Source: Schizochytrium sp. TIO01
Lineage: Eukaryota > Protista > Bigyra: Labyrinthulomycetes
Length of the DNA: 64,000 bases
Reading direction: 5' to 3'
NCBI GenBank assembly: GCA_004764695.1
Contig: SMSO01000031.1
Span: 3,634,436-3,698,435, forward strand
The notes under the pieces are model-generated. The model saw only the letters and a program-made list of their open reading frames with translations, did not search any database and was not told where the DNA came from. Below are positions 16,801 through 62,700 of this stretch, one piece after another. Every line of letters begins with the position of its first letter. The first letter of the stretch is position 1. A program made the translations under genes and the position numbers.

Positions 16801-17615
16801 AGCCCTTGTTGCAGGAATATGTATCGACCTGTTGCAGGTGGATCAACAGATGAGGCCACCAGCACTGATGGCGGGTCATCTGAGGACTCTGAGCATGCAG
16901 CAGCTAAAGCAGACTCGACCGTGATTGTACACACAAGTGAATTCATAGTGATATAGTTAGCTGGGCCTTCAGGTGGAGGGCGGTCAAGATGTTCACCTGC
17001 GACCTTGAGCATGAAGCCGACATTGTTAAGTAATCCGAGGAGAGAGAAAAATAAGGTTCTGTTGGTTTCCGTGGACCAGCGTAAGAATCCCCAGTCCTCG
17101 TAATAGTCAGATCCAGAGGATGCTGCAAGTCTGCACAACGCTCTGATTGTGAATTCAAGAGCATTTTGGTTTAAAAGCATTCGTATCCAGGCACGGCAGA
17201 GGCCAACTCTAGTAGCGCAGTGTGAGTTAGCTCGCACCAACATAATTGTTCCTCCAAAAGCAGAGGGATCAACACGTTCTAGCAAGAGGACAAATTCCCA
17301 AAAATGATATGTGTCCGGGCTCGAGGTCGAGTTTTGTCTAGGCCGGGTTTGCTTTTTACGACGACTCTGTGTACGAAGCCCGTGCCAGAGGATAAGTTCA
17401 AGAATATCCAAGAGAGCTTTGACCTCAGTAGAGTTGTCGAGAAGTTCTTCATCAAGGTCAATCTCGCCTTGGATGCGTCTTTGGCGTTTTGAAATGGCAG
17501 CTTGGACAACTCTTCGTACACCATCTTGAAGCCCCATGACTAACATCGCATGAACCAGAGCCGTGTCTTCATTTGAGCTTGCACTTCCCCCTCCACCACC
17601 ACCGAATGAAAACAT
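10845..17615 (-). CDS. RUN + PX + Rubicon-homology (zf-RING_9/DUF4206) protein, PLEKHM1/DEF8/Rubicon-related (2256 aa)
   Basis: N-terminal RUN (LLDILELILWHGL...VGLCRAWIRMLLNQNAL...YYEDWGFL); about 1400-aa Ser/Asp/Glu-rich linker; PX (FTIHRRFNDFKKF...PALPKT...RKRIALDDFLQDV); C-terminal RH zinc domain (GLAEQDFRCISC, RYCHYTERWFCPHCFH, LPTRVLHHWDF, CTYC, CAVC, CRGC..FHRTC, CPVC). ATG at 17615 (track start is GTG). Confidence 0.88.
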   Translation of the reverse strand: MFSFGGGGGGSASSNEDTALVHAMLVMGLQDGVRRVVQAAISKRQRRIQGEIDLDEELLDNSTEVKALLDILELILWHGLRTQSRRKKQTRPRQNSTSSPDTYHFWEFVLLLERVDPSAFGGTIMLVRANSHCATRVGLCRAWIRMLLNQNALEFTIRALCRLAASSGSDYYEDWGFLRWSTETNRTLFFSLLGLLNNVGFMLKVAGEHLDRPPPEGPANYITMNSLVCTITVESALAAACSESSDDPPSVLVASSVDPPATGRYIFLQQGLYGNKITGYQLRFNAKSQDQNALWAIYPPKESQYRYFAKATADGLVPCNDWEVAEYAKADFDKPPKLVQMLHSQSIRARIHPGKTKVKWGNLLRSEVQAIRVEVLQLKHIRENLDKVRKIAINEETDTTAAANTDESIETHTNERKLQPSLEEINQRTDDPQPSLKEAPSREEDPRPNSEEAAISEGEPQPSLEIASSSPPVPPEASRVATESLVYISQCDNNTPSQTILPSSGLPKEEDAEGIINEIGSTSVEAEMPCESPSVSDKLINTTTSLDDGSLSDRNSTMFHEGKQNTAVIETVKTLSNLHEEPSVCSVNSEADTSKTDHAEIDKYDSTVKSSQTTIEQSSSLDGEYASDILHASSRAELTSSPAEESSVCDDTHETTISDEQTIRAANLRIPLTDEAECASETAIGIGANFKNEKPSADKVENQSNSDITTHGVMKNSTSMMSEAAVDRISASIVDQADGDLHDVQSEKSITEVIMNDEDTDSESADEGGTSQPESAVNPHCVTHNEDLVCGDEHDNGKINTISTEGDVAGNKKVEIIRDSGSNDVVELSVTRKETSGAARVRFEDLSEDKKSDSLLHASSAVPSSNTASEFLECQVVNLDNTSPKLLDVELHSEQVKASDLSSTIEEEEVPSSNKRSVNYGSGNPTISSIDVDANTHSSDDERANFDSKMGLKNETDTLKAVPGDLTMTGVSSNTFESEVEEVDKETSVVVKYVEMPDNNIRCVNDDGAEAAQELSDRSPEEISIKRALSEHPKVNSDASSADNISTSEQSDYEELEDTSGIAKETLETVQSSQDGSEVNLADIHLGKNPDDGKVTKDEHEANIFLAASDQQTSFLNHWSTASGESAGSKEPRGSGVGTFLSRVESESSSNDGNHFGTVRSLNISTPSLNLSTFGSTESSDIQGQSQEGDSTISRIDQETMEQDDTPTASVETSSEPRNSPSIGKDDLDSNPDISSREADGSEVEDNIPSDHDEALATSSEHDPDYADDTANSQIYDEVSQSSSHIDAHESLSLESRLNDFSSRRGHVEFQNIGHMLARTEEEESSYASGHGYEGDSVSHVAPDALSITSYIGFDGESNSYVPPDGLSIASYSGLEAESSSHAALDALSTTSYSGIEGESSSHAHPDTLSGRGLSMASSVSSSSSASSNSTKTFMSNPRRKGNIRVTMARIEDGETQLDSSLDILDMFNTTSGRKRRSSRPVVMHTSQIGLAAQHGVAAIQRDSELLLNTSHIVSVQSDSSDDDFTTPGDLDKSSQGEETEEERMTRYAREEEESLAAFIAEQEAEHAKRLSSQSQSSEEGAKKYNASRAKEASEEDGGLHAPQVTRGAYEKLVRSYICEDPDSKTGRELAHQIYDIAGYEIGPRVLLHDNDRTSKHKGAATQAQDETSHAQTNDPSSEGKPRHGKKDDSSRRGIFSLLPGRLSLWGDTSGSSSISETQEFAPSLNTVRTSRTGVISEGGAESSGEDDDDVSIDIEISSNANLTRVESAGVVGHYISKQSSDMHVRFVIRVHLRKIARIGGSDHDNIGIVDASSWNSSDNDASILQESNVPSSPQSLSTPTSRSAIFTIHRRFNDFKKFRAALVVAAADAALEPDLIPALPKTGWLRSFAEDYITRKRIALDDFLQDVMTLDFADIAAREHPVIIDFLTRGTIVPWDDSGVAMDSVVDPLSRLARAKHGFHIALITEPRGDPHVLETRDSTGLAEQDFRCISCGKDISIALGRTSGLLRTMQNPAHRSARYCHYTERWFCPHCFHWGNDGADDEDDLGLDEDEDTEQPLHMQNRPEFRRFLPTRVLHHWDFEEYTVSKEAADFLDNINQHPVLCISAESPQLFGEVKDLQHARLLRLQLVHARETLEKCPNRRSSMEFTVPVLRTREHLASETEMYAINDLFELNIGSLIPLLMRAVEQAAKHITMDCTYCKSQSEVCAVCKDEEDLLYAFQIMKAVHCRGCRHLFHRTCFVELGGEDNCPVCHRA
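13390..13640 (-). repeat. Coding tandem repeat, about 4 x 63 nt (21 aa), within the RUN-PX-RH gene
   Basis: GYEGDSVSHVAPDALSITSYI / GFDGESNSYVPPDGLSIASYS / GLEAESSSHAALDALSTTSYS / GIEGESSSHAHPDTLS. Boundaries approximate. Confidence 0.8.
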
Positions 17616-18457
17616 GTTTACGAAATGCACACAAAATTCTCAAGGATATATTGCTTCGTTTCGAGCTTAGATTTGAAGTCAAAGGTGCAACTTCTGACGA
17701 GAAACAAATGAAGAATAACTACAAAGCCTCGATCCGCTAAAATATTTAATCAATTGCATGCAATGAGTCCCACGAATTTAGAGCACAATCGATCTCAGGC
17801 TGAAGCCTATTTGAGTAACACTATAATGAAGAATGTATAAACGTTGGTACGATTGTAATAGTGCCTTCCCAGGGCGAACGAAGCGGGAAAGAACACGCCT
17901 TGCGAGACTGGCGAGGCGCCTCGAACGGTCTACTCAGACCCAAACCCAGCCCCAGCCCCAGACGCCAAGGAGGCGCTTGCCGACAGCGCTGCGACTCGAA
18001 CCCCTCTCGCGGCAGGAGTGGAGTTTGTTGAATAATCAACACTGTTGAATTCAAGTTAGAAAGTAATTATAATAATCAATCATAACTATAATAATAACCT
18101 TTTTCTAAAAGGCTAATAACAATTTGAAGACATAGAACCAAGAGAAGGGTAAAAAAGATAGGCACTACAACTGAGCTATTCATTGCTAAGTAGACTAAAC
18201 TCAGAACCCTTTTTCTTTTCTTTTTCTCTCCTTTCGCTTCTTTTCTTTTCAGGCTATGACCCCTGAGCGAGCGCATAGCGCGCAGTGCCTTGGCGCCCGT
18301 TGTTCTCGTTTAGACTTTGCAGGGTAACCATCTTGAGCTCCTTTGCCACCTTGAGGAGCCGAGGGAATTGAGATTTAGATTAGCTTCGGGCGCCTCGCGG
18401 TTGGACACTTAGACGTTATCCTATTGCTGGCGTGCCGCAAGCTCTGTGGAGGCCATC

Positions 18458-41496: not shown

Positions 41497-43500
41497 TTAC
41501 TTGCGCTTAGGGGGCTCAAGAACCATCTCGTGAAGCGGGGAGCCGGCAGGCACCATAGGCAACACAAAGACATCCTTGTCCACAAACACCTCAAGCACAA
41601 CAGGGCCCTCGTACTCGAGGAACTTCTTCAAGGTCTCCTTGAGCTCAGACTGCTTGCTGCAGTACATGCCCTTTGCGCGCATGGCCTCAGCAACCTGGTC
41701 AAAACGGGGGTTAAACATTGGGGTACCAGAGTGGCGCTCGTCGTAGAAGAGATCCTGCCACACCTTGACCATACCCTGGTAGTTGTTCTGGAGAATCAAA
41801 ACCTTGACACCAACGTTGAACTCGGCAGCAGTGATGAGCTCCATACCGGTCATCGAGTATGAGGCATCACCATCAACATCAATCACAATAGCGTCAGGCT
41901 TGGCAATCTTGGCACCGATGGCGGCAGGGAGACCGTATCCCATGGTACCAGCACCACCGGAAGAGATCCACTGACGGGGCTTGGTCCAGGTCAAGAACTG
42001 AGCAGCCTGCATCTGGTGGCTACCAACACCGGTGGTGATGTAGACTTCGCGGCCGGAGTTCTCCTGGATCTCGAGGAGCTGCTTGTTGAGCTCGGTGAGA
42101 ACCTGCTGGGGCTTGAGGATTTCGTCATCGGTCTTGGCGGCATCGTAGATAAAGGGGTGCTTGGTCTTCCACTCGGAGATCTGGTCGAACCAAGGCTTGC
42201 GCTCCTTGAACTCAACATGCGGTGTAATATTGGCAAGGTTCTCCACGACGTCACCGAGGACAGCAACAGTGGGCTGCACAACCTTGTGAAGGTTCTTGGG
42301 GGAGATCTCAAAGTGCACAATACCACCACGGCCCTCGCGCTCTGCGCGCTTAGCCTCAGGGGCAAATGCGTCTACACGTCCAGTGACACGGTCATCAAAA
42401 CGTGCACCAAGAGCAAGGATAAGATCGGCATTCTGCATGGAGTAGTTAGCGAAAGCAGATCCGTGCATACCAAGCATCTTGAGGGAAAGCGGGCTGCGCT
42501 CGTCAAATCCACCGAGACCCTGCATGGTGGTGGTGACGGGGATGTTTGCCTTCTCTGCGAGCTCCTTGAGCACGCCGGGTCCGTCGAGCTGGCTCTGCAT
42601 GATACCCTGGCCAGCGTAGATGACAGGGCGCTCGGCACGGTTGATCATCTCAGCGATAAGCTGGAAATCGGCAGTGCCCGGAGCTCCGATGCGCTCCTTG
42701 TGGAAGAGCTCCACCTTCTGCTTCTGACGAACAGCCACCTGAGGAGAAGAGTCCGGGATCTGCTTCAACATCACAGCGGTGACATCCTTGGGAAGGTCGA
42801 CAAGCACAGGTCCAGGTCTTCCGCTGGTGGCGATTTCGAAGGCCTCGTTGATGCGTCTAGGGAGGTCTTTGACATCCTTGACCATGACGTTCCACTTGGT
42901 GCAGGACCTGCTGATACCCACGATATCACACTCCTGGAAAGCATCCGTTCCGACGGCGGAAGTCGGCACCTGGCCAGTGAACACGATGAGAGGGGTACCG
43001 TCCATGTAGGCATCCATGATGGGGGTGATGGTGTTGGTGGCGCCAGGACCAGAGGTCACGAGCACGATACCGGGTTTGCCAGTGGCACGAGCGTAACCTT
43101 CGGCCATGTGGCCTGCGCCCTGCTCGTGGCGAGCAAGGATGAACTTGAAGGCATCGCTCTCGAAAATGGCGTCGAAGACGGGAAGGATGGCACCACCAGG
43201 GTAGCCAAAGATGGTGTCCACACCGTGCTCGCGCATGAGCTCGTGAAAGATCTGGGCACCGGTCATGCCCACAAAGCGGGCATCGTCGCTGGCCGCCTGC
43301 GAGGTGGCAGAGGCGAGGGAGCTCTGCGAGCGCAGGGAGGGCTTGGAGACGGCATCATTGGAGAGGTTGGTCTTGGCCTGGACGCCAGACGAGGAAATGT
43401 CGGGCACAGACGAAGACAGAGAAGTGGAGAGGGCACGGAGACCGGCGACGCGGGGGGCGCGGGAGAACACGGCCAGGGGCCGGGAAGCGGCTGACCGCAT
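41497..43500 (-). CDS. ALS: Acetolactate synthase (AHAS) catalytic subunit, copy 1, canonical (667 aa with mitochondrial-type presequence)
   Basis: IFGYPGGAILP, RHEQGAGHMAEGYARATG, TSGPGATN, GQVPTSAVGTDAFQE, RFDDRVTG, ThDP motif GDASYSMT...QNN, QGMVKVWQ. Arg/Ser/Ala-rich N-terminus from ATG 43500; strong C/G-ending codon bias. Confidence 0.97.
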   Translation of the reverse strand: MRSAASRPLAVFSRAPRVAGLRALSTSLSSSVPDISSSGVQAKTNLSNDAVSKPSLRSQSSLASATSQAASDDARFVGMTGAQIFHELMREHGVDTIFGYPGGAILPVFDAIFESDAFKFILARHEQGAGHMAEGYARATGKPGIVLVTSGPGATNTITPIMDAYMDGTPLIVFTGQVPTSAVGTDAFQECDIVGISRSCTKWNVMVKDVKDLPRRINEAFEIATSGRPGPVLVDLPKDVTAVMLKQIPDSSPQVAVRQKQKVELFHKERIGAPGTADFQLIAEMINRAERPVIYAGQGIMQSQLDGPGVLKELAEKANIPVTTTMQGLGGFDERSPLSLKMLGMHGSAFANYSMQNADLILALGARFDDRVTGRVDAFAPEAKRAEREGRGGIVHFEISPKNLHKVVQPTVAVLGDVVENLANITPHVEFKERKPWFDQISEWKTKHPFIYDAAKTDDEILKPQQVLTELNKQLLEIQENSGREVYITTGVGSHQMQAAQFLTWTKPRQWISSGGAGTMGYGLPAAIGAKIAKPDAIVIDVDGDASYSMTGMELITAAEFNVGVKVLILQNNYQGMVKVWQDLFYDERHSGTPMFNPRFDQVAEAMRAKGMYCSKQSELKETLKKFLEYEGPVVLEVFVDKDVFVLPMVPAGSPLHEMVLEPPKRK

Positions 43501-43588
43501 GGGTGCTAGGGGTCGAGGGGTCAAGAGAAGTGCCTGCCTGCCTCGGAGCGGAGCGATTCTGGTGCTGCTTGTTCAAAGGCATTGATCG

Positions 43589-43692
<104 letters not shown>

Positions 43693-43770
43693 TATCTCAT
43701 TTTTAAAACCAAATTCAAATAAATAACTTTCAATAACTTTCATTAACTTTCAATAACTACTTTCTCTAAT

Positions 43771-43922
43771 TAACTAACTAACTAGCTAGCTAACTAACTA
43801 ACTAACGAGCTAAATAATTTTTTACTGTCCTAATAATCTTCCATTTTAAAAGTTTATATTTTCTTTTTTCAAAGGGCATAATAGGTCAGAAACTCATGAG
43901 ACTGACTGACTGACTGACTGAC
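43771..43922. repeat. (CTAA/CTAG)n tract (43771-43806) and (GACT)n tract (43900-43922)
   Basis: Directly visible short tetranucleotide tracts. Confidence 0.85.
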
Positions 43923-44466
43923 GGCAATTCTCGCGAGGCGAGCGAAGGAGGAGCTCCTTCTCGCGTGGCGCAGCTCCTGCTCTCTCCCCGAGGGTCCATA
44001 TTCGGACGCGCCGTCGCTGCTGCCTCCTTCGCCTGCCGCTTCTCTGCTTTCTCTGCCCTGCCGCGCAGCTCCTCCCGAGGGAAAACGGATGACGATGGAC
44101 TCTCTCTCTGTCTCTTCAAGCCCCATCCACATTACGTGGTAGCTGGCTGGCTAGCCATAACGCTAGCACCTCCATGCATATACACATACATACATGTAAT
44201 ACATAATGCATATCATCAACAATACACATACATACATATATACATTCATTTATTCACATATATGGAGAGAGAGAGAGAGACACTCTTAAAGTTCATGCGG
44301 ACCTTCAGTTTATGGAAAGAGATCGATACATACAGACCGTCGTAAGTTCGGGTTGCGAAGGCGATGCTTTCTTTCGCTCCTCCGGCTCCCGCAGAGGTCA
44401 CTCAGGGCCTTGATCTTTGACAAGTCGCTGCTGCACATCATAACCATAACGCGGCAGATTGTATTG

Positions 44467-44648
44467 ATTCGTTCGTTCGTTCATTCATTCATTCATTCAT
44501 CCATTTGTGTGCTATATGTATATGATATGCATATGTATGTATATGGATGTATATGTATAAATGTATGTATAAATGTATGTATAAATGTATGTATAAATGT
44601 ATGTATATGGATGTATATGTATAAATGTATGTATAAATGTATGTATGT
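44467..44648. repeat. (TTCG)/(TTCA)n tract followed by a 12-mer minisatellite (GTATAAATGTAT)n
   Basis: Directly visible; about 6 copies of the 12-mer with one interruption. Confidence 0.9.
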
Positions 44649-45434
44649 AAGCACAGAATCGACCAATGCAGATATCGATGAATGTCCTGTGGAGCTGGAG
44701 TTGCGTTTCCGTGAGGGAGGGGGAGGCTGCTCTCAGACGGCCTGGATATGGGCTTTGGAGCAGATCGACAGGGCCAGGACAGTTGGTTTTCAGGTTCATT
44801 TTCAAGGAAGGCTAAGTTGAGAAAGGTAAAGAGCTTAACTTACGTTAAATTCAATGAAAGCTTTGAAAGAAATCGATTGTAGAATGAATGAAAGATTGAA
44901 ACTAAAACTAAATTCAAAAGGAATGTGGTGTGCCCATAAGAAGATGAATCAATCAACGACCCCTAAGTAGCCGCTAAGGGGGTCGTAGTCAACTTCGCCG
45001 CTCCGCTCTTTCAAGTCCTTCGCACGCCAGTTCATTTAGTTTCACTAACAATATGGAGAAAGAAGCAAACTAAGTACTTTAAAGTTCACTCACTCATTCA
45101 TTTAAGCATTTCTTCTTAGAGGCTTTTCAAACTTACCTCCTACGGGTTGCTATGCACATGCTATGCCACATGGAGAAAAACTTTCTGACCTCTCGATAGT
45201 ACGGGAGCGACTACCGATAAAGGTAGCACTGGTGGTTGTGTGATTTTCTTTTTACTGGTGCCTCTGAGGGCGCTTTCAAAGGCGTGGACTTCTTGAAAGG
45301 GGGCGCAAGTGGGGTATAGCGCGCCCTGCAAGTAAAGAATGGGGGCACTACAGTAGAGTATCCGGGGCCACAGTGGGTTATCCGGGACCGCACACACGGA
45401 GGGGAGAGCAACGAAGCACGCATAAGCAGTCACT

Positions 45435-45472
45435 AACAGACAGAAGACAGACAGACAGACAGACAGACAGAC
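45435..45472. repeat. (ACAG)n microsatellite
   Basis: Directly visible. Confidence 0.9.
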
Positions 45473-46020
45473 TAAAATGCAGACAGACGGCCTTCGAGGT
45501 CGGAGGCGCAGGCACAGCGTCGCAGAGGCCGACTCGTGCCCGAGGAGAACCAGGCCAAGGGCACGCGTACAGCGAAGGCCACGCGTAAGCAAGCGAGAGT
45601 GAGCGCTATCCACTGTTTTCGTACAGATTTATTATTATTATAATTATTAAATTAAATTAAATTAAAGTAAATTAATAAATTCAAAGAATAAATAAAAACT
45701 AAAAAAGAGAGTCACCACCGTCGATTAAAAATGTCCTTCCCTCATTCACTGCTCCTTGTGCCTTTATTTAGGTTGTTTTATTTTGAATTAAAAACATTAT
45801 TTTATTATTTTGAAAACGTTATTATTTTTATTACTATTTTTAAAGAAACTAATCTAGCAAAACTACAGTATAGTGGGAAGGAAAAAAGAAAAAAAAAAAA
45901 AGAGGAAGAGGGGCTACTACTTAATTGTAGGCCTAGCCGTGTTAGCATAATGGCTAGGTAGCATTTATTTCCTGTTCTATCTTCTTTTCACTAACAATAA
46001 AAGTAACAATAAGTGAAGGG

Positions 46021-46093
46021 AATGCAATGCAATAAGTGAAAGGAATGCAATGTAATGCAATGCAATGCAATGCAATGTAATGCAATGTAATGC
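46021..46093. repeat. (AATGC/AATGT)n pentanucleotide repeat
   Basis: Directly visible. Confidence 0.9.
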
Positions 46094-46199
46094 GATTCAA
46101 TGTAGCGGAATCGATGCCTTCCCTTAGGCCTCGCGCTGCCTCCAAGAGGCTAGGCGCACTGTGCAGATGCAGGAAGGAAAGTCTAGCGTCAGTGCCGTG

Positions 46200-46660
46200 A
46201 AAGCGGGCCGGTTTCGGGAGGTTGACCTCGATGCGTCAACGAATTGCACTCCGTTTTAGGCAGTCCCACACGCTTTCGGAAAGGAGGCATTCAGGCTGTA
46301 CTGGCGGAGCGCTAGATCCCAGTTATGGTTTACGTTAGGACTCCCTTGGCGGTGGGTGGCAGCGAGCAATTCGCCTACTTCCCGTGGATTTGTTGATGAT
46401 ATGTTGTTGCCATTGGTGGCCTTCAAGTTTGCGATTCCCAAGTCCTTCTTGAGTCTCGACCAACACATGAGGTTGAAGAACTAAGTGAGGGCGGCGACCG
46501 ACCTCAAGTGAGGATAACGCCAGTTGTCCAGTATGCCAAGTCTCCGTTGATGGCGATATTGAGGTGAATCTCGAGGTTGATCTTGGCTCGCGCTCCTTGA
46601 AGAGGTCAATATCCACGAGCTCCTCGATTTTGCGAGGAAAACAAGTATGTAGAAGGATGT
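46200..46660 (-). pseudogene. Probable decayed coding fragment of unknown identity
   Basis: Coding-like C/G-ending codons that switch frame several times (KIEELVDIDLFKERE / KINLEIHLNIAINGDLAYWTTGVILT / VAALT*FFNL...), with stops. Boundaries approximate. Confidence 0.35.
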
Positions 46661-48570
46661 GTTCACGCGAAGCTTGCTTCTTCTTCGTTGAAAGGGATGC
46701 AATTGCAGACAATGACAGTGTCAGAAGAAAGAACAACCGACCCTTTGTGGACGATGCATCGTGAGTCTTCAGCTTTGATCGTTTGCGCTTCACGAGAAAG
46801 AAACAAACAAGCACTCCTGTAGAAAATGTGAGCTTGTACCTCTAGAGGTATCCACTAGTTCTGTTTTTCTGTCGAAGTCATAAGGTTATTCATCTTCGAT
46901 CAACATTGCGATGTCGTCTAAAGCCGTGGCCAAGAACACACTCCTTTTTCTAATACCCTTTTGGGAAAGGCCACCAACTGCTAGTACAGCTCCACGAACA
47001 CGAACACGAACACGACTACGAGCACGAGCAAGCAGATCCGGATTCTCCACTTCACTTGCTATCATAGGTTAGAGTCCACCACCAATAAATAATTATAATT
47101 TTACCTTTTTCCTTTTTATGAATTCTAAAGTAATGGAACAACAAACTAGAAACTCAGGCAAACCCTGGTTGTCTTGACTGTCCACGGTTATATTCTGAAA
47201 GTTTGGGTCGTGGATCGTGATGGCACCGTCCAAAGGATGGTGATGTGGATAATTCTACCTAGGTAGCACGTGCTCTGCCTGCTTTTGTTTCTAAAACTAA
47301 AAAGCACACGCGCAGGATTGATGACGCCAGAATTGAAAGTCTACAATCGAAAACGATGTTGTATCCGCTCTGTAATTGATGTTAACTTAGTGCTAATAGG
47401 CGGCTCTTTTCCTCCCTTTGACTCCTTTCCGTCTTCTGTTCTCGGGCCACTCCCGCGAGTGCTTTTGAGAATGAGCTCACCTGTTTTAGTTTTTAGGTAA
47501 TAACATTAATCATGCATCGCAAGACGGCTATTAAGACCGACATCCATCCAGGTGCCCGTTATCAGCGCAGGTGATTCATAGAGATCTTCTTTAAAACTTT
47601 CTCGACTGCGTGTGCGATGACCTCCGTCTTTGACTCAGGTACCTAATGATTGCTCAAACGTTGATTGATTCGATTCAGGGCAATCTGGAACTGGCTGTCA
47701 GTCCGAAGGTGGTGGTGCTGGATGGAGGCCTTATAATAGGCCACCTGAAAGCACAGCAGAGAACTATACTGGTAATGGCGACAACAACAGAATCTGTAGC
47801 ACTGCACTTCACCACGACACGAATTGAGTTGCAAAGTGATAGTGCTACTTATTGAGGTGGTAGTGCCAGGCAGGTCCTATCTACGTAATCACCCTTGTAA
47901 TTGGTGCTAGTAGTAGCAGTTATAGTAGCTACTCCATGACTCTCTAGCAAGCTGATTGAGAAGTGACCAAGATATATGTGAGAAAATGTGTATTCGTTTT
48001 CAGAGCCTTGGAGTCTCAAGCATTGCCCTTAGGAAAGGAGTGATTGCATTGCTCGATGGCAAATGGTCAGCTTGTAGGATTATGTAATTTGTATGTTGCA
48101 GTGGTAGTGCAGTTTTGTAAGATCTCCTCAGCAGCGTAATCCCAAGTGGCTTTTCAAGAATTCCTTATAGTTCTTCGATGGTTCGAAGTGAGGAAAGAAC
48201 CTGCCGGAATTTCAACCACCATTGTTTCTTGATTCACGGCAAGAGGTCAGTGCTGCTAGTAGAGGTTGCTGATAGCAACTACCTACCCAAACCTTGCGAT
48301 TCCTCACAAAACAACCAACTTTGCTGACTGCCAAGCGAAAGAGATTTCTTTGCACTTGTGGTTCTTATTTTGAGCGGATATATTAGAAGGAAGCAAGATA
48401 AGATAGGATTGTTGGTTACTTCATATCGCTAACAGAATTGGGTAATTCAACGTCACAAACTTCACTCCAATGATCAAAGGAAAGCGTAAAATGTAATTAT
48501 AAAGCTTTATAGATTACTGCAATGCTGCTTCATGAAATACACATGTAAAGAAGGAATGACCTCCTCTAAG

Positions 48571-50583
48571 TTATTTACGAGAACGCTTAGGAGGCTCCAG
48601 AACCATCTCGTGAAGCGGGGAGCCACCGGGTACCATAGGCAACACAAAGACATCCTTGTCCACAAACACCTCAAGCACAACAGGGCCCTCGTACTCGAGG
48701 AACTTCTTCAAGGTCTCCTTGAGCTCAGACTGCTTGCTGCAGTACATGCCCTTTGCGCGCATGGCCTCAGCAAGATGGTCAAAACGAGGATTAAACATTG
48801 GGGTACCAGAGTGGCGCTCGTCGTAGAAGAGATCCTGCCACACCTTGACCATACCCTGGTAGTTGTTCTGGAGAATCAAAACCTTGACACCAACGTTGAA
48901 CTCGGCAGCAGTGATGAGCTCCATACCGGTCATCGAGTATGAGGCATCACCATCAACATCAATCACAATAGCGTCAGGCTTGGCAATCTTGGCACCGATG
49001 GCGGCAGGGAGACCGTATCCCATGGTACCAGCACCACCGGAAGAGATCCACTGACGGGGCTGGATCCAGGTCAAGAACTGAGCAGCCTGCATCTGGTGGC
49101 TACCAACACCGGTGGTGATGTAGACTTCGCGGCCGGAGTTCTCCTGGATCTCGAGGAGCTGCTTGTTGAGCTCGGTGAGAACCTGCTGGGGCTTGAGGAT
49201 TTCGTCATCGGTCTTGGCGGCATCGTAGATAAAGGGGTGCTTGGTCTTCCACTCGGAGATCTGGTCGAACCAAGGCTTGCGCTCCTTGAACTCAACATGC
49301 GGTGTAATATTGGCAAGGTTCTCCACGACGTCACCGAGGACAGCAACAGTGGGCTGCACAACCTTGTGAAGGTTCTTGGGGGAGATCTCAAAGTGCACAA
49401 TACCACCACGGCCTTCGCGCTCTGCGCGCTTAGCCTCAGGGGCAAATGCGTCTACACGTCCAGTAATACGGTCATCAAAACGTGCACCAAGAGCAAGGAT
49501 AAGATCGGCACTCTGCATGGAGTAGTTAGCGAAAGCAGATCCGTGCATACCAAGCATCTTGAGGGAAAGCGGGCTGCGCTCGTCAAATCCACCGAGACCC
49601 TGCATGGTGGTGGTGACGGGGATGTTTGCCTTCTCTGCGAGCTCCTTGAGCACGCCGGGTCCGTCGAGCTGGCTCTGCATGATACCCTGGCCAGCGTAGA
49701 TGACAGGGCGCTCGGCACGGTTGATCATCTCAGCGATAAGCTGGAAATCGGCAGTGCCCGGAGCTCCGATGCGCTCCTTGTGGAAGAGCTCCACCTTCTG
49801 CTTCTGGCGAACAGCTACGAGAGGTGTAGAGTCCGGAATCTCTCGAAGTACCACAGCGGTGACATCCTTGGGAAGGTCGACAAGCACAGGTCCAGGTCTT
49901 CCGCTGGTGGCGATTTCGAAGGCCTCGTTGATGCGTCTAGGGAGGTCTTTGACATCCTTGACCATAACGTTCCATTTGGTGCATGGCTGACTGATGCCGA
50001 TAATATCACACTCTTGAAACCCATCAGAACCTGCCACAGCTGTTGCGACCTGACCTGTGAACACGATGAGAGGGGTACCGTCCATGTAGGCGTCCATGAT
50101 GGGGGTGATGGTGTTTGTAGCACCTGGACCAGAGGTCACGAGCACGATACCGGGTTTGCCAGTGGCACGAGCGTAACCTTCGGCCATGTGGCCTGCGCCC
50201 TGCTCGTGGCGAGCAAGGATGAACTTGAAAGCATCGCTTTCATAGATAGCATCAAAAACTGGCAAAATAGCACCACCGGGGTATCCAAAGATCGTGTCAA
50301 CGTTATGATCCTGCATGAGTTCATGGAAAATCTCAGCACCTGTAAGACCAACAAATCGCGCGTCATCAGATGCTGCTTGCACAGTCGCAGCTGACCTTGC
50401 CAGCGAGCTTTGTGCCCTTACGTTTGTATCTTTAAATCCAACTTGACTGCTGCTTGAAGTCGAGTTGACCGAATTGTTTATAGTTGTGCTTGAAGATGAT
50501 GCACGCAAAATCTTCTTTGTGTGGCGTCCAGCCAGCATAGCTGGACTTCTTGCTAAACGCCTAGAGGTTGGAGTCAACAACAT
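48571..50583 (-). CDS. ALS: Acetolactate synthase (AHAS) catalytic subunit, copy 2, with altered inhibitor-binding loop (670 aa)
   Basis: Same catalytic motifs as copy 1, intact frame, different presequence (MLLTPTSRRLARSPAMLAGR; ATG 50583). Loop reads GQVATAVAGSDGFQECDIIGISQP; also RFDDRITG and PMVPGG. Confidence 0.96.
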   Translation of the reverse strand: MLLTPTSRRLARSPAMLAGRHTKKILRASSSSTTINNSVNSTSSSSQVGFKDTNVRAQSSLARSAATVQAASDDARFVGLTGAEIFHELMQDHNVDTIFGYPGGAILPVFDAIYESDAFKFILARHEQGAGHMAEGYARATGKPGIVLVTSGPGATNTITPIMDAYMDGTPLIVFTGQVATAVAGSDGFQECDIIGISQPCTKWNVMVKDVKDLPRRINEAFEIATSGRPGPVLVDLPKDVTAVVLREIPDSTPLVAVRQKQKVELFHKERIGAPGTADFQLIAEMINRAERPVIYAGQGIMQSQLDGPGVLKELAEKANIPVTTTMQGLGGFDERSPLSLKMLGMHGSAFANYSMQSADLILALGARFDDRITGRVDAFAPEAKRAEREGRGGIVHFEISPKNLHKVVQPTVAVLGDVVENLANITPHVEFKERKPWFDQISEWKTKHPFIYDAAKTDDEILKPQQVLTELNKQLLEIQENSGREVYITTGVGSHQMQAAQFLTWIQPRQWISSGGAGTMGYGLPAAIGAKIAKPDAIVIDVDGDASYSMTGMELITAAEFNVGVKVLILQNNYQGMVKVWQDLFYDERHSGTPMFNPRFDHLAEAMRAKGMYCSKQSELKETLKKFLEYEGPVVLEVFVDKDVFVLPMVPGGSPLHEMVLEPPKRSRK

Positions 50584-51897
50584 TTCTATCGATTGTAAAA
50601 TCCAGTAAAGGATATCACAATAAGACCACAGCACCGTTCCTCGAAAAGCTTACCGCTTACCAAGATCTTCGCGTTTGAGTATTCAGGTTTTGCCTCTCAC
50701 TTGAACAATGATTTATATTTCTTGCCATCCTGATAACCTGTATTAGTGTAGTATTATGTGCATTTTATTCAATCCTGTTTTGATTGGGCAATCACTCTTT
50801 GCAGGTTCCTGTCCTTTCTTGCCTCCCCCCGTAATACCTGTAATACCTCAGGGCAATGTTCTTGGCACGCCGCTAAAGTTAGTTCCCCGCGTTACCTCAC
50901 GTTACATATATGAAGAGCACTCCTTTGGATTCTGAAAGAACCTATCTGTTGCCGTAGTTGAGAACGGGTCGCATCGAGGTTAGCTCGATACTCGAAGTTT
51001 CTGCCGCGTTCCAGGCGAGCGACGCTGCTCTTAAACACTGGAAATCAATGTACAGAGCGACTCCTTGAATACTAAAGTTTAGTATTTGCCAAGTGAATGA
51101 GTAATTCTTGCTCGTGACCTCAAGTCTACCTGGGCTCAGAACTAGACCATAAAACGACTTACGTTTCATAACCTCACGTTTCATGTATAGAGGTTTCAAA
51201 ATGAGGTTTCATAAATGCCTTTCAGTTTAAGTAGGTTATAAATTTGGTGGTTTCGAAATCAAGGAGTTGATAACTATTAGCAGTATAAGGAACAGGGAAT
51301 CTTATGTTAGTGCAACAAAACGATGGATAGATAGATATATTACGTAAACGACGGTTCTCCTAAGCTGAACTAGGGTCCATTGTCGAGCAAGTTTCTGCTA
51401 TTGTCTATGGGTATCTCCGGATACGAGCCTAACTGATTCATGTTAATAATTTGTATTAAATGAGTTAGCGCAGGTTGAGCCCGTCTTGGCAGCCTCTGGA
51501 GGTAAGAATCATGATGATTGTTTTTAATTGTAGCGTTTGAGCATATTCTTCTGAGTCCTGTTCAAGGAATCATCACCACCGAAAGCCTAAGTTGGACCTT
51601 CGATCGTGCCACAGTCCATGTCGTTGGTTGCTGACAGATCATCATGCCAACCCAAGAAATCGTCGACCCTTGTAATGTAGTGGACTGGGAAGTAGGTGTT
51701 AGAGTAAGCTTTAGCTATAACGCTATCGACTGCTTGAGAAATAATGCAAAAAGTGAAAGAAAACAAAATTTTGATCGTCACAGAAAAAGCGCATCCTTGC
51801 AAGCAGGAATTGCGTAAAGTAGGTACCGACGTACTATTCTGCGCACCAAACCTTAAACCCGGGAAGAAGCGGGGTCGAGGGCATCAGCAATAGCACG

Positions 51898-57017: not shown

Positions 57018-57824
57018 TTAGCGCGCACCAAGGCATCGGCGACCACCATCAATGGTGAGATGAGTTCCAGTAATAAAATCACTCTTGGACGAATCCGCGA
57101 GAAAGAGGATAGCTTCGGCTGCTTCTTCGGGCTTGCCAACACGGCCCAAGGGATGTGTGACTTCTACAGAACGTTTGAGGAAGTTATCGTATTGCTCATC
57201 GCTAAGACCACCACGTTTCTGCAATTCCGTCACAATGACGCCAGGGTTCACTGTATTGCAACGAATACCCTTTGGCGCAAGATCTACAGCAGCACAATCA
57301 GTGAGCATGTCGACACTGGCTTTCGAGGCGCAGTAAGCAGCCACTCCTCCAAATGATTGAAGGCCATTGACCGAAGAAACATTGACGATTGAGCTGGTGG
57401 GTTCGCCCTTGGCTTTGATCATGTAGGGGATAGCCTTAGTCATGAAGCAAAAGACGCCACGTGCATTCACATTGAAGTTAAAGTCCCAGTTTTCCATGGA
57501 AGCATCACCAACAGCTCCACCCTTAAGCACGCCGGCGCAATTGACAAGAATATCAAGCTTTCCATTATCACTCAAAGAGGAAACAGATTCTTGAACAATG
57601 CGTTCGACATCACTGTCCTGAGTGACATCGCCCGGGAAGCAGCCCACTTTGGGAGCGTCAGTACCAAGTTCTTGTTTGATCTTGTCCATGAGCTCTTTAA
57701 GAGCAGACTCTTGGCGGCCAGTGAGTGCAACAGAGCATCCATGTTTCGCCAAGGTCAACGCTGCAGCAGCGCCAATACCGGAGGAAGCTCCGGTGACTAG
57801 AGCAAGCTTTCCACGAAGCGACAT
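57018..57824 (-). CDS. Classical short-chain dehydrogenase/reductase (FabG-like) (268 aa)
   Basis: VTGASSGIG, LDILVNCAG, NVSS, YCASK, IRCNTVNPG, HPLGRVGKPEEAA, FITG..IDGG. ATG at 57824. Confidence 0.93.
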   Translation of the reverse strand: MSLRGKLALVTGASSGIGAAAALTLAKHGCSVALTGRQESALKELMDKIKQELGTDAPKVGCFPGDVTQDSDVERIVQESVSSLSDNGKLDILVNCAGVLKGGAVGDASMENWDFNFNVNARGVFCFMTKAIPYMIKAKGEPTSSIVNVSSVNGLQSFGGVAAYCASKASVDMLTDCAAVDLAPKGIRCNTVNPGVIVTELQKRGGLSDEQYDNFLKRSVEVTHPLGRVGKPEEAAEAILFLADSSKSDFITGTHLTIDGGRRCLGAR

Positions 57825-58654
57825 GATAAAGATCTTGCTTTGTCCGCTCTTCAAGTCTGTCAAAGAACAATCTCCTGCCTTCCACGCTGGCTAAAGGGGC
57901 TTTGCTCTGGGTTTGGATCTTTCAATATGTTTGATTGAGAAGAAGTAGTTATCCAACCGGGTTTGGCAAATGAGGTTTGCATAAACCTTTGTGTAGAAGT
58001 TGTATCTTCAAGCCTTTGCAATAATCTTTCCTAGATGGTGTGCCAGCACAAAAATGAGCAAGCCTATTAAAACAAGTAGTAGGAAGTTCTAGTAAATAAT
58101 AGGTACTTAGATGTGGCTAGAAGGTAGTATTGAACGATGCGAGGGTGTTTCCATCCTGCGATCTACCATGTTTGTGGTCTGAGAACATTCGCGGCACGTG
58201 CTTGCAAAAGATGATGAGCTCAATCTCGAGCAAACAGTACAGTGTAGTGAATGACCTTCTCAAATTAGTAGACAAGAACGATCTTTTAGCTATGTAGTGG
58301 GCGACACCTAACAGAAGTGACATTTGTATGGCACTTGCACGGAGCTCAAGTTTCCTCGTATCGGTAACATATTATGCCAAAGTGAAGCTGATTATTTTCT
58401 AAAAGTTGTATATTACTCGACTACATAAGGTTCTTACTGAAATCTCTTACTATTACTCAACAACTCAACATAAGTAATCTATCCGAAACACCGTTTGCAT
58501 TTTTATGAGATTAACCCAAAGAAAAATGGAATACCATGAAATGCCGAGTTCAAAACACGTATTCCACCATTGCAAGAGTTTAGTTCTAACAAGGAGCAAT
58601 TCATGCTCTACTATGCACACTTTGCGCCAGCAATCTCCTTTCGAATTGTGCAAT

Positions 58655-59722
58655 CTACAGTAATGATACTGCATCAGATGGCAACTGTGCATTCCACGAC
58701 TCCCATAAAGCGCTTGTAAATTCGCGGTTAAGACACGCTGGGTGTGCAGGCCAGAGAAAGAGTGACTCAGAGCATGCTGTAGCTTTTTGCATGTTTTCTG
58801 CAAGCCATAATGCAGCAGTCCGGAGTAAAAATGGTTTCTCACCCCAGAGAAGAAATCCTGGGACACGGTAAGGGATCAAAATTCGAGATGACGATTGGAT
58901 GTCTTCCATAGGAAAGTCATCAAATGCAAATGCAGCCATTAACGTGTATCTCGCTCCATCAAAGGTAGTGAATCTCCTTAACTCTGGAGGCCGAGATGGA
59001 TCTCCAGCACTAATAAGTTTGTCGCGTTGGTCAACTGGGATACTAAGATTTGATTGCACCATTCCAGGAGCAAATGCTTGAATTTGAACTTTGGATCCTT
59101 TGTGTTTTAATCGTGCAGCAAGCTCTGTAGCAAAAACATTGAGCGCCAGTTTGCTGTTCGCATAAGCGGCAAGAAGCCCTTTGAGGGAGTAATCAAATCG
59201 TGGTGGGCTTGTGAGCTGGTCTGGCTCACCAGCCCATTGAAGGATAGAACTAGTTAATACAACTCGTGCAGGGAGGTCAGAAGATTCGAGGCTTGGTAGG
59301 AGCAAATGTGTAAGCAGAATGGGACCAAGGAAATTGCTCGTGTACAAGAGATCCATTCCAGACGATTCGCTTTTCACAGGGCCTTTATAGCCAGCATACG
59401 ACATGCCAGCATTTAAGAAGAGGAGGTCGATCTTATGCAAAGACTTGGTGTTAAGCCAATCTGCAAGGTTGCGAACTTGGTCAAAGTTACTGAGATCAGC
59501 ATGCTGATACCACACCATGTCCGAGCCATATCTATTTGCTAACGCTTCGGCTACATTTCGGCAGCGGTTTTCTGATCTTCCGTGCACGAGAACTCTTGCT
59601 CCGCGTTCAAGCAGTTGTTTCGCTAGTTCCAGCCCAATGCCACTAGTGCTGCCTGTCACGACCGCAGTTCTACCTCGCAAAGTAGGCGGCAACTGTATGC
59701 ATATCTTGATCTGCTCGTCCAT
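58655..59722 (-). CDS. Short-chain dehydrogenase/reductase, retinol dehydrogenase/WWOX-like (355 aa)
   Basis: VTGSTSGIGLE, HADLSNFDQV, LFLNAG, NFLGPILLTHLLLP, RVVLTSS, YANSKLA, PGMVQSNL. First ATG at 59722 (track start is TTG). Confidence 0.9.
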   Translation of the reverse strand: MDEQIKICIQLPPTLRGRTAVVTGSTSGIGLELAKQLLERGARVLVHGRSENRCRNVAEALANRYGSDMVWYQHADLSNFDQVRNLADWLNTKSLHKIDLLFLNAGMSYAGYKGPVKSESSGMDLLYTSNFLGPILLTHLLLPSLESSDLPARVVLTSSILQWAGEPDQLTSPPRFDYSLKGLLAAYANSKLALNVFATELAARLKHKGSKVQIQAFAPGMVQSNLSIPVDQRDKLISAGDPSRPPELRRFTTFDGARYTLMAAFAFDDFPMEDIQSSSRILIPYRVPGFLLWGEKPFLLRTAALWLAENMQKATACSESLFLWPAHPACLNREFTSALWESWNAQLPSDAVSLL

Positions 59723-62700
59723 CACGAAAGAAAAAACTGCTTTTAGAATAACAGCTGAGAGCCACCGTCTCCGCCCAACTAGGCTTGCGCAATTGATAAG
59801 CACCAAGCGACTCCTATCGTGTATTGCGTGTTTCACGAAGTCTGGCGAAAAAAAATAACCATTGTGAAGATACTTTGATAACAACCACTACGATGTCTTT
59901 TTCTTTTAAGCTTCAAATTATTCATTCGTTCCTAGTGTGTTCAATATATTATTTCGCCCTAGTTTCCTTAGTTGAGGGAAAACCTTCAGCTGATGCCACG
60001 CGTAACTTCTTAGCCAGGTAGGTACCATGAAGTAGTCATGGATTCTGTTCTCCCGACAAGTACTTGAGAAAGGTAGTAGCACCAGCTGCAAGATTTAGAG
60101 CTTGGCCACTCTTAAGATGAAGGACAAGTATGCTACTTTGTCCATAAATAGGGTAAATTAAGACGTCATACAGCTCATCTTCTCCAAAAGAAACAAAAAC
60201 TGTGAATGGAAAATGTTATTTCAGCGAATTGTATGTGAGCATCACGAAACATGCCTTTCTCTGAAAAAGTTATACATCGACAAGCTCCGGAAAACGTGAA
60301 GTCGCATATTTGCGGAAGGTTATTGGAAATGACATTGCGGATCAATCTATACTCGATAGCATCTTATTTAAAAAGAGCAACGATCTCCTTCCGAACATTT
60401 GAGTTGATATTGTGGGAGGAAGTTTAGGTTGGAAATGACGAAGGGAGGGATACATGACACACTCTTTTGTTTGGTCTTCTTTTACTCCACGCCACTGAGG
60501 AAATTGAATTATTTTTGGGGATAAGTGACCCAACTAATAATGTCTTTTGTTTGAAGAAACACGTATGAGATACAAAGAGACAGCAGCGGAAAGTTAAAGG
60601 AGATTTTAAGGTGTAAACTATTCGAGCTGGAGGAGAAGTTGGGATCGGTATACTTAGCAATTGACGCAGTCTAGTACTTCTAGTGCAGTAAATCTACATC
60701 GGTATCTACAGTACTTTTGGCAAAAGACCCTTGCAATAGATTGGAAACCTCATGGATAAAACTAGTCTTAGTAGATCGCAAGCTTGCCAGACTCTAGTGA
60801 TGCATCAAGATATGTATGGCGACTGATTGCTTTGAACTTAAATGCTGAAGAAAACCAAGTTATTCATTTAATAATCTTGAATATTCTAGCTAAGAGGAGC
60901 ACGTTTAGATCTAGATCTAGCAATTTAGGTGCTCAGAGAAGGGAAGGCAATACACCAGAAGTTGACTCTCATCGCTAAAATAAGTTCGCCTACGGGTTAT
61001 CCATAAGCAAGCAATACGTCGAATTATATCATATTGGACCACTTCATCGTAGCACAGAAACCGCCACATTGCGTTAGCTTAGAAGGAGTAATGCAAATTG
61101 GTGGTTCAATCTGCTACACACATTTTTTATGGAATATGAATTTGCTGGAAAACCTCGTTCTTGAGATAATGCGTAAGTTGATGTAGTTTCTTTTTCTTTT
61201 CTTTTTTCCAAAACCTGCAAAACGTACTGATGTAATTTTTGTGGGTGATTGCAAGGTAAAGCCAACATTAATAAAAAGAAAGTTCTGGTCTCTTCAAGTC
61301 TGAATCAAATTATCTTAGAAGATCATATAGAAACTGTATCGAATTCAAAAGTAAAACTCTAATTGCTAATAACACGAAGACTATCCTAGATATTAAAAAA
61401 CAAACAAATACAAGGTTATGAAGCCAGGGAATTCAAGAATTGAAGCTGCAAATACGTTTTCAACAGGAGACATAGCATAGAGAAGATTAAATTGTTTTCG
61501 AACGAGATTATATAACTTGAATTCCTCACCTATGTGGATTACAGATCAAAGTAGTCTCTTAATTGCAACCAGGGCCAGGTCACTTGAGAGACCGGTTCCA
61601 AGATCAGCAGATCGCTAACCCTCAAGCCAGAGTAAAGAAAGCCTTCCTAAAAATTTAAATATTCAAGTCTCGTACCACTATCCTATGTGAATCTTTCAAT
61701 GACAAGTCTCGTCTTTGAGTAGGAATTCAACTGTTGGGAAGTTCATAACAATGAGTCTATAGCCTCTCAAAATATATAGAGAGGTTATGGTCAATAGTTG
61801 TTTCAATAAACTAACTCAAGACGTAGCTGTAAGTCCTTCGTGCAGGATTTACAACTAACAAATTTCTGTTCTCCTTTCTTGAGTATCACTATTACCAAAT
61901 AGCTACGAAGGGGAGACATCGCTCCCGCCGACTAAGTTCTATGTAAAATATCAAGGTAGCAGAGCTTGGATGACTCTAGTGCTTTCATGTGCTAGTTTGA
62001 GAAGCCCAAAGTGAAATGACAAGGTTCTCAACAAGCATACACTTGCCAAAAGAGGCCCTGGTCAAGATATCTACAAATATACAGAGATGAGTTGTTCGTT
62101 GGCTTGCGCAACACATTAAAAGATCTGTTTAATCGACCTGCTCTTCTGAATCACCTATACTTTTATTAGTATACTAGTCAATTGTGAGGTGTATTTTGTA
62201 GAGTGCAAGTAGCAAACTGGCCAAAAGTTTTGACTATACTTTGTAATCAAGAGCAACGTGATCTACCACGTGTCAAAGAAGTAGCTGACAACCCTGTTGC
62301 GTAGAAGAAGAACGTCTGATGATGCCTAACACATGCCTCAAATTCGTACCAATCAAATACTTGTTTGACAATGATGGCTTTGGTCTAAGTCAGAACAAAT
62401 ATTTGCATAGAATATTCCAAAACCCTAATATATGATCAACCTGTCAACATGACCTTCGCTCTCAAGTCATATTGCTTAGGGCTTTCTTTCTCATGAATAC
62501 AGAGTTTTCCCTGAAAGGAGTGACCACAGTTTGGGTAATTAGGTCATAAATACAACGAGCATATACAAGTACTATAGTGTTGTGAGACACCATGCAAAGA
62601 TTTGCTATTACACTTCATGCACAATCGAATTGTGATATCTACAACCAAAGACACTTATGGCCATGGCGTCAAAGTAGTTTCTGGCGTCCATTGTAAGCCC

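Follow-up and report, generated by a model that had tools for sequence, protein, structure and literature searches.

Among the nearest known counterparts of the locus treated in this study are the mitochondrial acetohydroxyacid synthases (AHAS, also acetolactate synthases, ALS) of fungi, the herbicide-resistant AHAS of weeds, and the additional AHAS copies associated with inhibitor biosynthesis in fungi. The AHAS channel is formed jointly by two monomers, one contributing its alpha domain and the other its gamma domain, and AHAS isozymes are well known in bacteria. Nine AHAS positions are known from resistant weeds (PMC11625580), and residues 197, 200, 205, and 653 are among the herbicide contacts of a docking table (PMC13631945). 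Pro197Ala in Lolium rigidum results in full survival on sulfometuron, though not on imazapyr, with a Km for pyruvate that is lower by approximately 41% and a barely changed feedback (PMC2935867). Cryptococcus neoformans is intrinsically resistant to sulfometuron, which was attributed to its Ilv2p (Kingsbury 2004, cited in PMC4302243). Our literature search revealed no description of AHAS isozymes or of two AHAS genes in thraustochytrids. Here, we analyze two neighboring AHAS catalytic-subunit genes, copy 1 and copy 2, of Schizochytrium sp. TIO01 in a window of 64,000 nucleotides of contig SMSO01000031.1, i.e., the whole stretch of DNA under study, with a focus on copy 2 and its altered channel loop.

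We favor, with moderate confidence, the interpretation that copy 2 is a transcribed second AHAS maintained by selection, which would act as an inhibitor-insensitive or kinetically distinct isozyme. This view was developed from comparative sequence analysis and is weighed against its alternatives in the last section.

Two AHAS genes and their mosaic structure

The two genes and the N-terminal region of copy 2 are located as follows (GC3 denotes the G+C fraction at third codon positions):

48571..50583, minus strand: AHAS catalytic-subunit gene, copy 2; 670 amino acids, intron-free, stop codon at 48571-48573, assigned by Pfam and structure matches
50392..50583, minus strand: private N-terminal presequence of copy 2, amino acids 18-81
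41497..43500, minus strand: AHAS catalytic-subunit gene, copy 1; canonical loop GQVPTSAVGTDAFQ, GC3-rich coding sequence, first ATG at 43498-43500

The open reading frame of copy 2 runs uninterrupted over 48571..50634 (minus strand), where 50583 marks Met18 of the frame and gives the protein of 670 amino acids. From Met18 on, copy 2 is colinear with the transcript P0121 of the MMETSP collection and equals it in length and N-terminus. The frame of copy 1 spans 41497..43524 (minus strand), 7 kb from copy 2. A search of the whole genome (64 Mb, 37 contigs) found exactly these two AHAS genes and a single gene for the regulatory subunit (match to ALS_ss_C, PF10369, with 68 bits at G000:C31:8416955-8417140).

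Copy 2 matches the Pfam domains TPP_enzyme_N (PF02776), TPP_enzyme_M (PF00205), and TPP_enzyme_C (PF02775) with E-values of 1e-37 to 1e-47, all far above the cut-off and in the order N-terminal, central (flavin adenine dinucleotide, FAD) and C-terminal that characterizes AHAS catalytic subunits. Its top solved relatives are fungal AHAS, namely 6dek of Candida albicans (E = 7e-234) and 1n0h of Saccharomyces cerevisiae. Scores drop from 744-781 bits for fungal AHAS to about 430 for the plant enzymes, while glyoxylate carboligase reaches some 250 and catabolic ALS some 190-210. By this measure, biosynthetic AHAS are nearer to copy 2 than the other enzymes dependent on thiamine diphosphate (ThDP), catabolic ALS and glyoxylate carboligase included. 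The identity amounts to 94% to copy 1 over the mature part and about 60% to solved AHAS, and at these levels the predicted AHAS fold is not in doubt.

The preliminary description of this locus, made from the sequence without database searches, had reported that the catalytic motifs (RHEQ, FQE, GDAS...NN) and the Trp of MVKVWQ are kept, which holds for both copies. In copy 2, the translation and its alignment to the yeast and Candida enzymes display the Glu of RHEQ, FQE, the Lys of LPKDV, the Asp-Arg pair, the Trp of MVKVWQ, and GDAS...NN. All sequence criteria applied place copy 2 in the AHAS family. Because the catalytic, ThDP, and FAD motifs are intact, copy 2 would most probably work as an active AHAS isozyme together with the single regulatory subunit of the genome. 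The presequence of copy 2 is rich in Arg, Ser, and Thr, contains not a single acidic residue in its first approximately 50 amino acids, and shows no relationship to that of copy 1. Its composition and the mitochondrial location of the fungal-type relatives suggest mitochondrial targeting. Since both proteins carry presequences, expression of both genes would be likely to produce mixed dimers, in which copy 1 and copy 2 form hybrid sites.

DNA similarity of the pair is confined to the coding region (41504-43218 versus 48584-50298, 95.3%), whereas flanks and presequences are unrelated. Within this region, the differences are strongly clustered, and copy 2 can be divided into a converted core, further identical tracts and five unconverted patches:

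50230..50391, minus strand: unconverted patch A, amino acids 82-135; 51 nucleotide differences in 162 nucleotides, GC3 of 0.33 versus 0.76 in copy 1
49966..50127, minus strand: unconverted patch B, amino acids 170-223, containing the channel loop; synonymous divergence (dS) 1.57, nonsynonymous divergence (dN) 0.085
49807..49851, minus strand: unconverted patch C, amino acids 262-276, the linker after the Lys of LPKDV
48793..49806, minus strand: converted core, amino acids 277-614; 6 differences in 1014 nucleotides, GC3 of 0.67 as in copy 1
amino acids 615-621 of copy 2: a shorter unconverted patch
48571..48633, minus strand: unconverted patch E, amino acids 668-687 and stop codon, holding Ala670Gly (48625-48627) and the private C-terminal SRK

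In patches A to C almost all codons differ synonymously, with Nei-Gojobori dS values of 1.3-1.6 or not computable and dN values of 0.09-0.27. The tracts between the patches (102, 114, and 138 nucleotides) do not show a single difference. Identical runs of 349, 295, and 271 nucleotides exceed the longest run of 225 nucleotides obtained when the 118 differences were permuted 10,000 times (p < 1e-4), and at third positions identical runs of 207 and 113 codons exceed the permutation maximum of 88.

The trees deduced from the two partitions differ as well. Besides the two Schizochytrium copies, they include the canonical AHAS of Hondaea fermentalgiana (GBG32071, Hondaea A) and a second AHAS of this species (GBG30851.1, Hondaea B). 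In the core tree copy 1 and copy 2 are sisters (support 99/97), and the grouping of copy 2 with Hondaea B is rejected by the approximately unbiased (AU) test (p = 3e-5). The protein tree of the patches joins copy 2 to Hondaea B (support 95/68); here, AU tests do not reject the groupings of copy 1 with copy 2 (p = 0.31) or of copy 1 with Hondaea A and P0122 (p = 0.155). P0122 is a protein of 684 amino acids, presumably the patented Schizochytrium ALS, and its loop, like that of Hondaea A, is the same as in copy 1. Because identical tracts alternate with patches of saturated dS and the partition trees are discordant, the pair consists of old tandem paralogs in concerted evolution by gene conversion.

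GC3 points to the direction of this process. Neighboring genes show values of 0.35-0.50, the private parts of copy 2 0.33-0.56, and copy 1 0.70-0.78, while the value of the shared core is 0.67 for either copy. With private parts of copy 2 resembling the neighborhood and a core resembling copy 1, conversion would have run from copy 1 as donor into copy 2.

The 5-kb spacer between the genes (43525-48570) contains short open reading frames only (126-159 amino acids), which are Pfam-negative. DNA similarity of the spacer to either flank was not found, and thus the original boundaries of the duplication are erased. Strains differ in isolated codons of copy 2 that show the copy 1 state, at 49511, 49062-49064, 49465-49467, and 48774-48775 (sequencing runs X8 and X15). 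Asn375, the copy 1 state, occurs in the copy 2 contig of organism E, and several such states are present in organism H. These differences suggest ongoing conversion, although some of the contigs may be chimeric.

The channel loop of copy 2

Substitutions were scored by a codon-by-codon comparison of copy 1 and copy 2. Those in and near the channel loop and beside the Asp-Arg pair are:

50011..50055, minus strand: channel loop of copy 2, amino acids 194-208, GQVATAVAGSDGFQE; Pro197Ala, Ser199Ala, Ala200Val, Val201Ala, Thr203Ser, Ala205Gly
49984..49989, minus strand: Arg216Gln and Ser217Pro (GISRSC to GISQPC); 93% of 120 homologs and 10/10 outgroups have Arg
49465..49467, minus strand: Val390Ile, a two-base island within the converted core, adjoining the Asp-Arg pair that corresponds to Arabidopsis 376/377

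All five exchanges listed in the preliminary description were recovered: Pro to Ala at 197 (CCG to GCA, 50044-50046), Ala to Val at 200 (GCC to GTG, 50035-50037), Ala to Gly at 205 (GCT to GGG, 50020-50022), DDRV to DDRI, i.e., Val390Ile (GTC to ATT, 49465-49467), and PMVPAG to PMVPGG, i.e., Ala670Gly (GCC to GGT, 48625-48627). The comparison adds Ser199Ala, Val201Ala, Thr203Ser, Val212Ile, Arg216Gln, and Ser217Pro. Alignment to the yeast AHAS 1n0h confirms the proposed equivalence of the loop positions with yeast Pro192, Ala195, and Ala200 (Arabidopsis Pro197 and Ala205), and places residue 670 of copy 2 on Arabidopsis Ser653, as had been supposed.

In order to polarize these changes, the 28 gap-free aligned positions of the mature part at which the copies differ were compared with ten other labyrinthulomycete-type AHAS that served as outgroups. 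Derived states fall on copy 2 at positions 197, 200, 203, 205, 212, 216, 390, and 670, i.e., at eight of nine polarizable sites, and on copy 1 at 270 only. In patch B, the low dN (0.085) against saturated dS argues for long-term purifying selection on the private sequence of copy 2. Even if all replacements are put on the copy 2 branch, these values indicate a selection long active on copy 2, and the low dN argues against a decaying pseudogene-to-be.

With respect to inhibitors, Pro197Ala is a documented allele, and its earlier designation as a known resistance substitution is in good agreement with the sulfometuron resistance of Lolium (PMC2935867). The states of copy 2 at 205 and 653 are not documented as resistance alleles in the literature examined. 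In the solved chain 6wo1, the Pro197 position is occupied by Ala and the Thr203 position by Ser; we take this chain to be the C. neoformans enzyme. On account of the effect of Pro197Ala in Lolium, the docking contacts, and the resistance attributed to C. neoformans Ilv2p, channel blockers of the sulfonylurea type are predicted to bind copy 2 more weakly than the canonical enzyme.

Taken one by one, the substitutions are less exceptional than the preliminary description implied, as Ala or Val at 197, Ser203, and Gly670 are common in close single-copy homologs. Among 120 close homologs, position 197 is occupied by Pro in 72%, Ala in 17%, and Val in 9%, so that approximately 28% lack Pro; Ser203 and Gly670 are each found in 18%. 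Rarer states are Gly205 (2%), Val200 (3%), Ala201 (0%), Gln216 (0%), and Ile390 (0/120). In a wider set of 213 AHAS, Gly205 is found in Marasmius and Coemansia, Ile390 in Hortaea and others, and Gln216 in Clonostachys, in apparently ordinary AHAS, and on the tree of this set position 197 switched between Pro and non-Pro at least 23 times. A database search with the loop alone retrieved the copy 2 type in no other organism, apart from the JGI protein P0001. A coupled channel type, suggested by the association of non-Pro197 with Ser203 (Fisher 1.7e-10) and Ile390 (4e-4), was dropped, since a test with phylogenetically independent pairs gave median p values of 0.375 and 1.

Copy 2 in other strains and a second AHAS in Hondaea

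The copy 2 stretch is present in 20 public runs, which come from 11 studies and bear eight organism labels. In two other strains, DNA contigs match copy 2 at 99% identity or more, contain the same loop and span the private parts, and P0121 carries both the private presequence and the private C-terminus. A contig of run X15 shows Val200Leu in the loop, as do organism H and P0001. P0001 and P0121 represent different mosaics of copy 1 and copy 2. As assemblies of near-identical paralogs can be chimeric, only local copy-specific segments of these two sequences were used, and linkage between patches should not be deduced from database sequences of the AHAS pair.

Run X15, a probable transcriptome, yields contig depths of 12.6, 16.8, and 23.6 for the copy-2-specific N-terminal part, loop patch, and patch C, respectively, compared to 26.5 for the N-terminal part of copy 1 and 55-88 for shared segments, and in run X17 copy 1 reaches approximately 900-1150 while the 5' part of copy 2 is found at 31 (about 3%); that both runs represent RNA is a guess, and contig depth reflects expression poorly. 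In their direction, these values are consistent with transcription of copy 2 below the level of copy 1 and possibly to a varying extent.

The preliminary description had proposed to look for the same paralog in other thraustochytrids, and H. fermentalgiana does contain a second AHAS. Hondaea B (P0003 in our data) is located on a different contig from the canonical Hondaea gene. Its loop reads TDQVTASSKGTDDARE, and its C-terminus shows PMVPGG. At positions 197, 200, 205, 212, 216, and 670, i.e., at six of the eight derived positions of copy 2, Hondaea B is also non-ancestral. The outgroup state is retained by both canonical copies at 395 positions, and within this set Hondaea B is derived at 6/8 of the copy 2 positions compared to 35/387 of all others (Fisher p = 2e-5). 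For the unconverted patches, the corresponding fractions are 6/7 versus 13/83 (p = 2.6e-4), and for patch B alone 5/6 versus 5/38 (p = 1.2e-3), where it has to be considered that the positions are clustered and their independence is incomplete. Two of the shared derived positions carry the same residue (Ile212 and Gly670) and four a different one.

Hondaea B lacks Gly194, Phe206, and Gln207, the latter two being the Phe-Gln of the FQE motif, whereas copy 2 keeps all three. A further alteration of Hondaea B is located next to Ala122 (GHPGGASLPIF). Hondaea B may thus no longer be a conventional AHAS. Concerning its relation to copy 2, either the loop was remodeled once in an old second-AHAS lineage before the split of the genera, or it was released or re-tuned twice. 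The patch tree favors the first alternative, and with it orthology of copy 2 and Hondaea B, but falls short of proof.

Competing explanations and comparison with known systems

According to the interpretation that we favor, copy 2 would be the older and lower-expressed member of an ancient tandem pair. Approximately three quarters of its mature coding sequence would have been overwritten recently by conversion from the codon-optimized housekeeping copy 1, and its promoter, presequence, and five patches would still be private. The largest functional difference would then reside in the remodeled loop (residues 197-217), which lines the access channel for substrates and inhibitors, complemented by Ile390 and Gly670. 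From this, we predict weaker binding of sulfonylurea-type compounds as well as modestly altered pyruvate kinetics and feedback. The earlier view of copy 2 as a second paralog with changes in the channel is retained; the gene is intact, transcribed, and derived, and its private sequence is concentrated in the channel loop. Copy 2 may have an adaptive role.

Several observations weigh against this interpretation. P0121 combines the ends of copy 2 with a canonical loop, and hence represents either a chimeric assembly or a real allele with a converted loop. The depth of copy 2 in run X15 is roughly a third to a half of that of copy 1, and codon usage in its private parts is at background level only. 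As each substitution is natural in single-copy AHAS and the Pro site is labile, the loop may be an ordinary alternative state rather than a specialization. Three of the nine positions of resistant weeds (197, 205, and 653) differ between the copies (hypergeometric p = 0.007), but these sites are clustered and were picked after looking. Likewise, six of the nine fall into unconverted islands that make up 24% of the length, yet with three of five independent clusters the enrichment is not significant (p about 0.1). The loss of Phe-Gln from the FQE motif of Hondaea B could reflect a lineage under relaxed constraint, and the divergent islands could be neutral leftovers.

These points lead to the strongest alternative, which we regard as possible but doubtful: copy 2 may be a redundant duplicate under relaxed constraint that is kept intact by conversion repair, with the loop as neutral or slightly harmful drift in the parts conversion did not reach. 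Such a fate would fit the low contig depth relative to copy 1 and the background codon usage, the finding that every polarizable change at conserved sites falls on copy 2, the very long branch (1.81) of the second Hondaea copy with its missing Phe206 and Gln207, and the tolerance of other natural AHAS for each substitution. The mosaic also varies among the strains examined, so that conversion would be ongoing. However, dN in the private patches is as low as 0.09-0.12 in relation to saturated dS, and the patches therefore did not evolve neutrally. In addition, the reading frame, the presequence, and all catalytic motifs are intact, and a divergence of two genera at the same channel positions is unexpected under random decay.

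An improbable alternative regards copy 2, and more clearly Hondaea B, as a different ThDP-dependent carboligase or decarboxylase that uses other 2-keto acids, or as an enzyme on the way to it. A remodeled loop shapes the substrate channel too, and Hondaea B is changed at Gly194, Phe206, Gln207, and the segment around Ala122. Copy 2, however, keeps Phe206, Gln207, Lys256, Arg377, Trp574, and the rest of the active site, as is expected given that three quarters of it are copy 1 sequence.

Even less probable is a role of copy 2 as self-resistance gene, i.e., as an insensitive target that protects the organism against an AHAS inhibitor of its own. An additional target copy with changes in the inhibitor channel is present, and such copies have precedents in the clusters for harzianic acid, chlorflavonin, and pterrespiramide (PMC12616698, PMC12947280). 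The preliminary description had quoted a resistant AHAS within the harzianic acid cluster; the resistant ALS indeed exists, but it is encoded outside the cluster, whereas the copy inside is truncated (PMC12616698). Linkage is consequently not obligatory, and its lack is not decisive. The genome also contains one large nonribosomal peptide synthetase (NRPS) gene, an open frame of approximately 4400 amino acids with three condensation domains, which are the only matches to PF00668 in the 64-Mb genome. Yet this NRPS is located on another contig (C24; G000:C24:3816208-3824973), no AHAS homolog or fragment was found beside it, and our literature search did not reveal an AHAS inhibitor from thraustochytrids. 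To our knowledge, NRPS genes are not commonly discussed for these organisms.

A biosynthetic cluster was not found in the 64-kb window either, i.e., inhibitor-making genes are not co-located with copy 2. Its neighbors comprise genes for a DcpS-like protein, GDPD, DMAP1, two short-chain dehydrogenases/reductases, an alpha-2-macroglobulin (A2M)-like protein, XPB, a Rubicon-like, and a NACHT-WD40 protein. The larger ones and the reductases are located as follows:

10845-17630, minus strand: RUN-PX-Rubicon-homology protein, 2261 amino acids
23119-26634, plus strand: NPHP3_N/AAA and WD40 (NACHT-WD-like) protein, 1171 amino acids
32488-37080, minus strand: alpha-2-macroglobulin/thioester-type protein of a stramenopile, 1530 amino acids, with MG2, TED, and A2M receptor domains
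57018-59884, minus strand: two adjacent short-chain dehydrogenase/reductase genes, 281 and 409 amino acids; other biosynthetic genes were not found around them

Thus, the suggestion of a self-made inhibitor has nothing positive behind it: the window is free of clusters, and the sole NRPS lies elsewhere without an AHAS fragment.

Finally, an artefact (assembly duplication, collapsed allele, or integrated engineered ALS marker) is hardly credible. Mutated ALS markers for Schizochytrium do exist (pMON50201-3, PMC6209683) and P0001 and P0121 demonstrate that assemblies of the locus can be chimeric, but flanks and presequences of the two genes are unrelated, the patches are at saturated synonymous divergence, copy 2 recurs throughout the runs, studies, and organism labels listed above, and DNA contigs of other strains span its private parts.

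Returning to a selection-maintained isozyme, a more far-reaching scenario can be sketched, although we consider it unlikely. The Aurantiochytrium/Hondaea clade may have kept a second AHAS with a different channel since before the split of the genera, and in A. limacinum selection may shield the loop, Ile390, and Gly670 from conversion, so that copy 2 would serve as an inhibitor-insensitive backup against natural AHAS blockers of marine competitors.

Our findings suggest that AHAS isozymes exist in a stramenopile protist. The locus represents a clean natural tandem pair, in which conversion homogenized most of the sequence and islands around the inhibitor channel stay old. Hence, it offers a system for asking whether selection holds functional differences against conversion. 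If the enzyme encoded by copy 2 is ordinary, the finding reduces to a well-documented duplicate. There is a practical aspect, too: mutated ALS in combination with sulfometuron selection is an established transformation marker in Schizochytrium-type production strains (PMC6209683), and a native second AHAS with Ala197 could alter the efficiency of sulfometuron selection in Aurantiochytrium or supply a native marker allele.

Among known systems, fungal mitochondrial AHAS (Ilv2) have a number of features in common with copy 2. Both are three-domain ThDP/FAD enzymes that align end to end (E-values of 1e-225 to 1e-234), with the catalytic Glu, FQE, Lys, Asp-Arg, Trp, and ThDP motifs, an N-terminal presequence, and a partner regulatory subunit. 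In contrast to Ilv2, copy 2 is one of two copies, shows the loop GQVATAVAGSDGFQE versus GQVPTSAIGTDAFQE, and replaces Arg by Gln at 216 and Val by Ile at 390. Its Ala197 and Ser203 states are also found in many fungal AHAS, as in the naturally sulfonylurea-insensitive single-copy enzymes. These, however, are the sole AHAS of their organism, while copy 2 is accompanied by a canonical Pro-type copy at a distance of 7 kb, and copy 2 goes beyond them with Val200, Ala201, Gly205, and Gln216.

With herbicide-resistant plant AHAS (Pro197Ala, Ala205Val/Phe, and changes of Ser653), copy 2 has Pro197Ala in common, which is a field resistance allele. It differs in that its changes are old, as they are surrounded by saturated dS, rather than recent point mutations under herbicide use, and in that Ala205Gly and the exchange of Ala for Gly at the 653 position are not listed as resistance alleles. 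The paralogs of fungal inhibitor clusters (harzianic acid, chlorflavonin, pterrespiramide, and sdt) resemble copy 2 as additional target copies with changes at the inhibitor site. Copy 2 differs from these by its stramenopile protist host, by the lack of linked biosynthetic genes and of a known inhibitor, and by the homogenization of the pair by conversion. Hondaea B finally provides a counterpart in a related thraustochytrid, a second AHAS beside a canonical one with shared derived channel positions, but it is encoded on a separate contig from the canonical gene and is far more diverged (branch 1.81).

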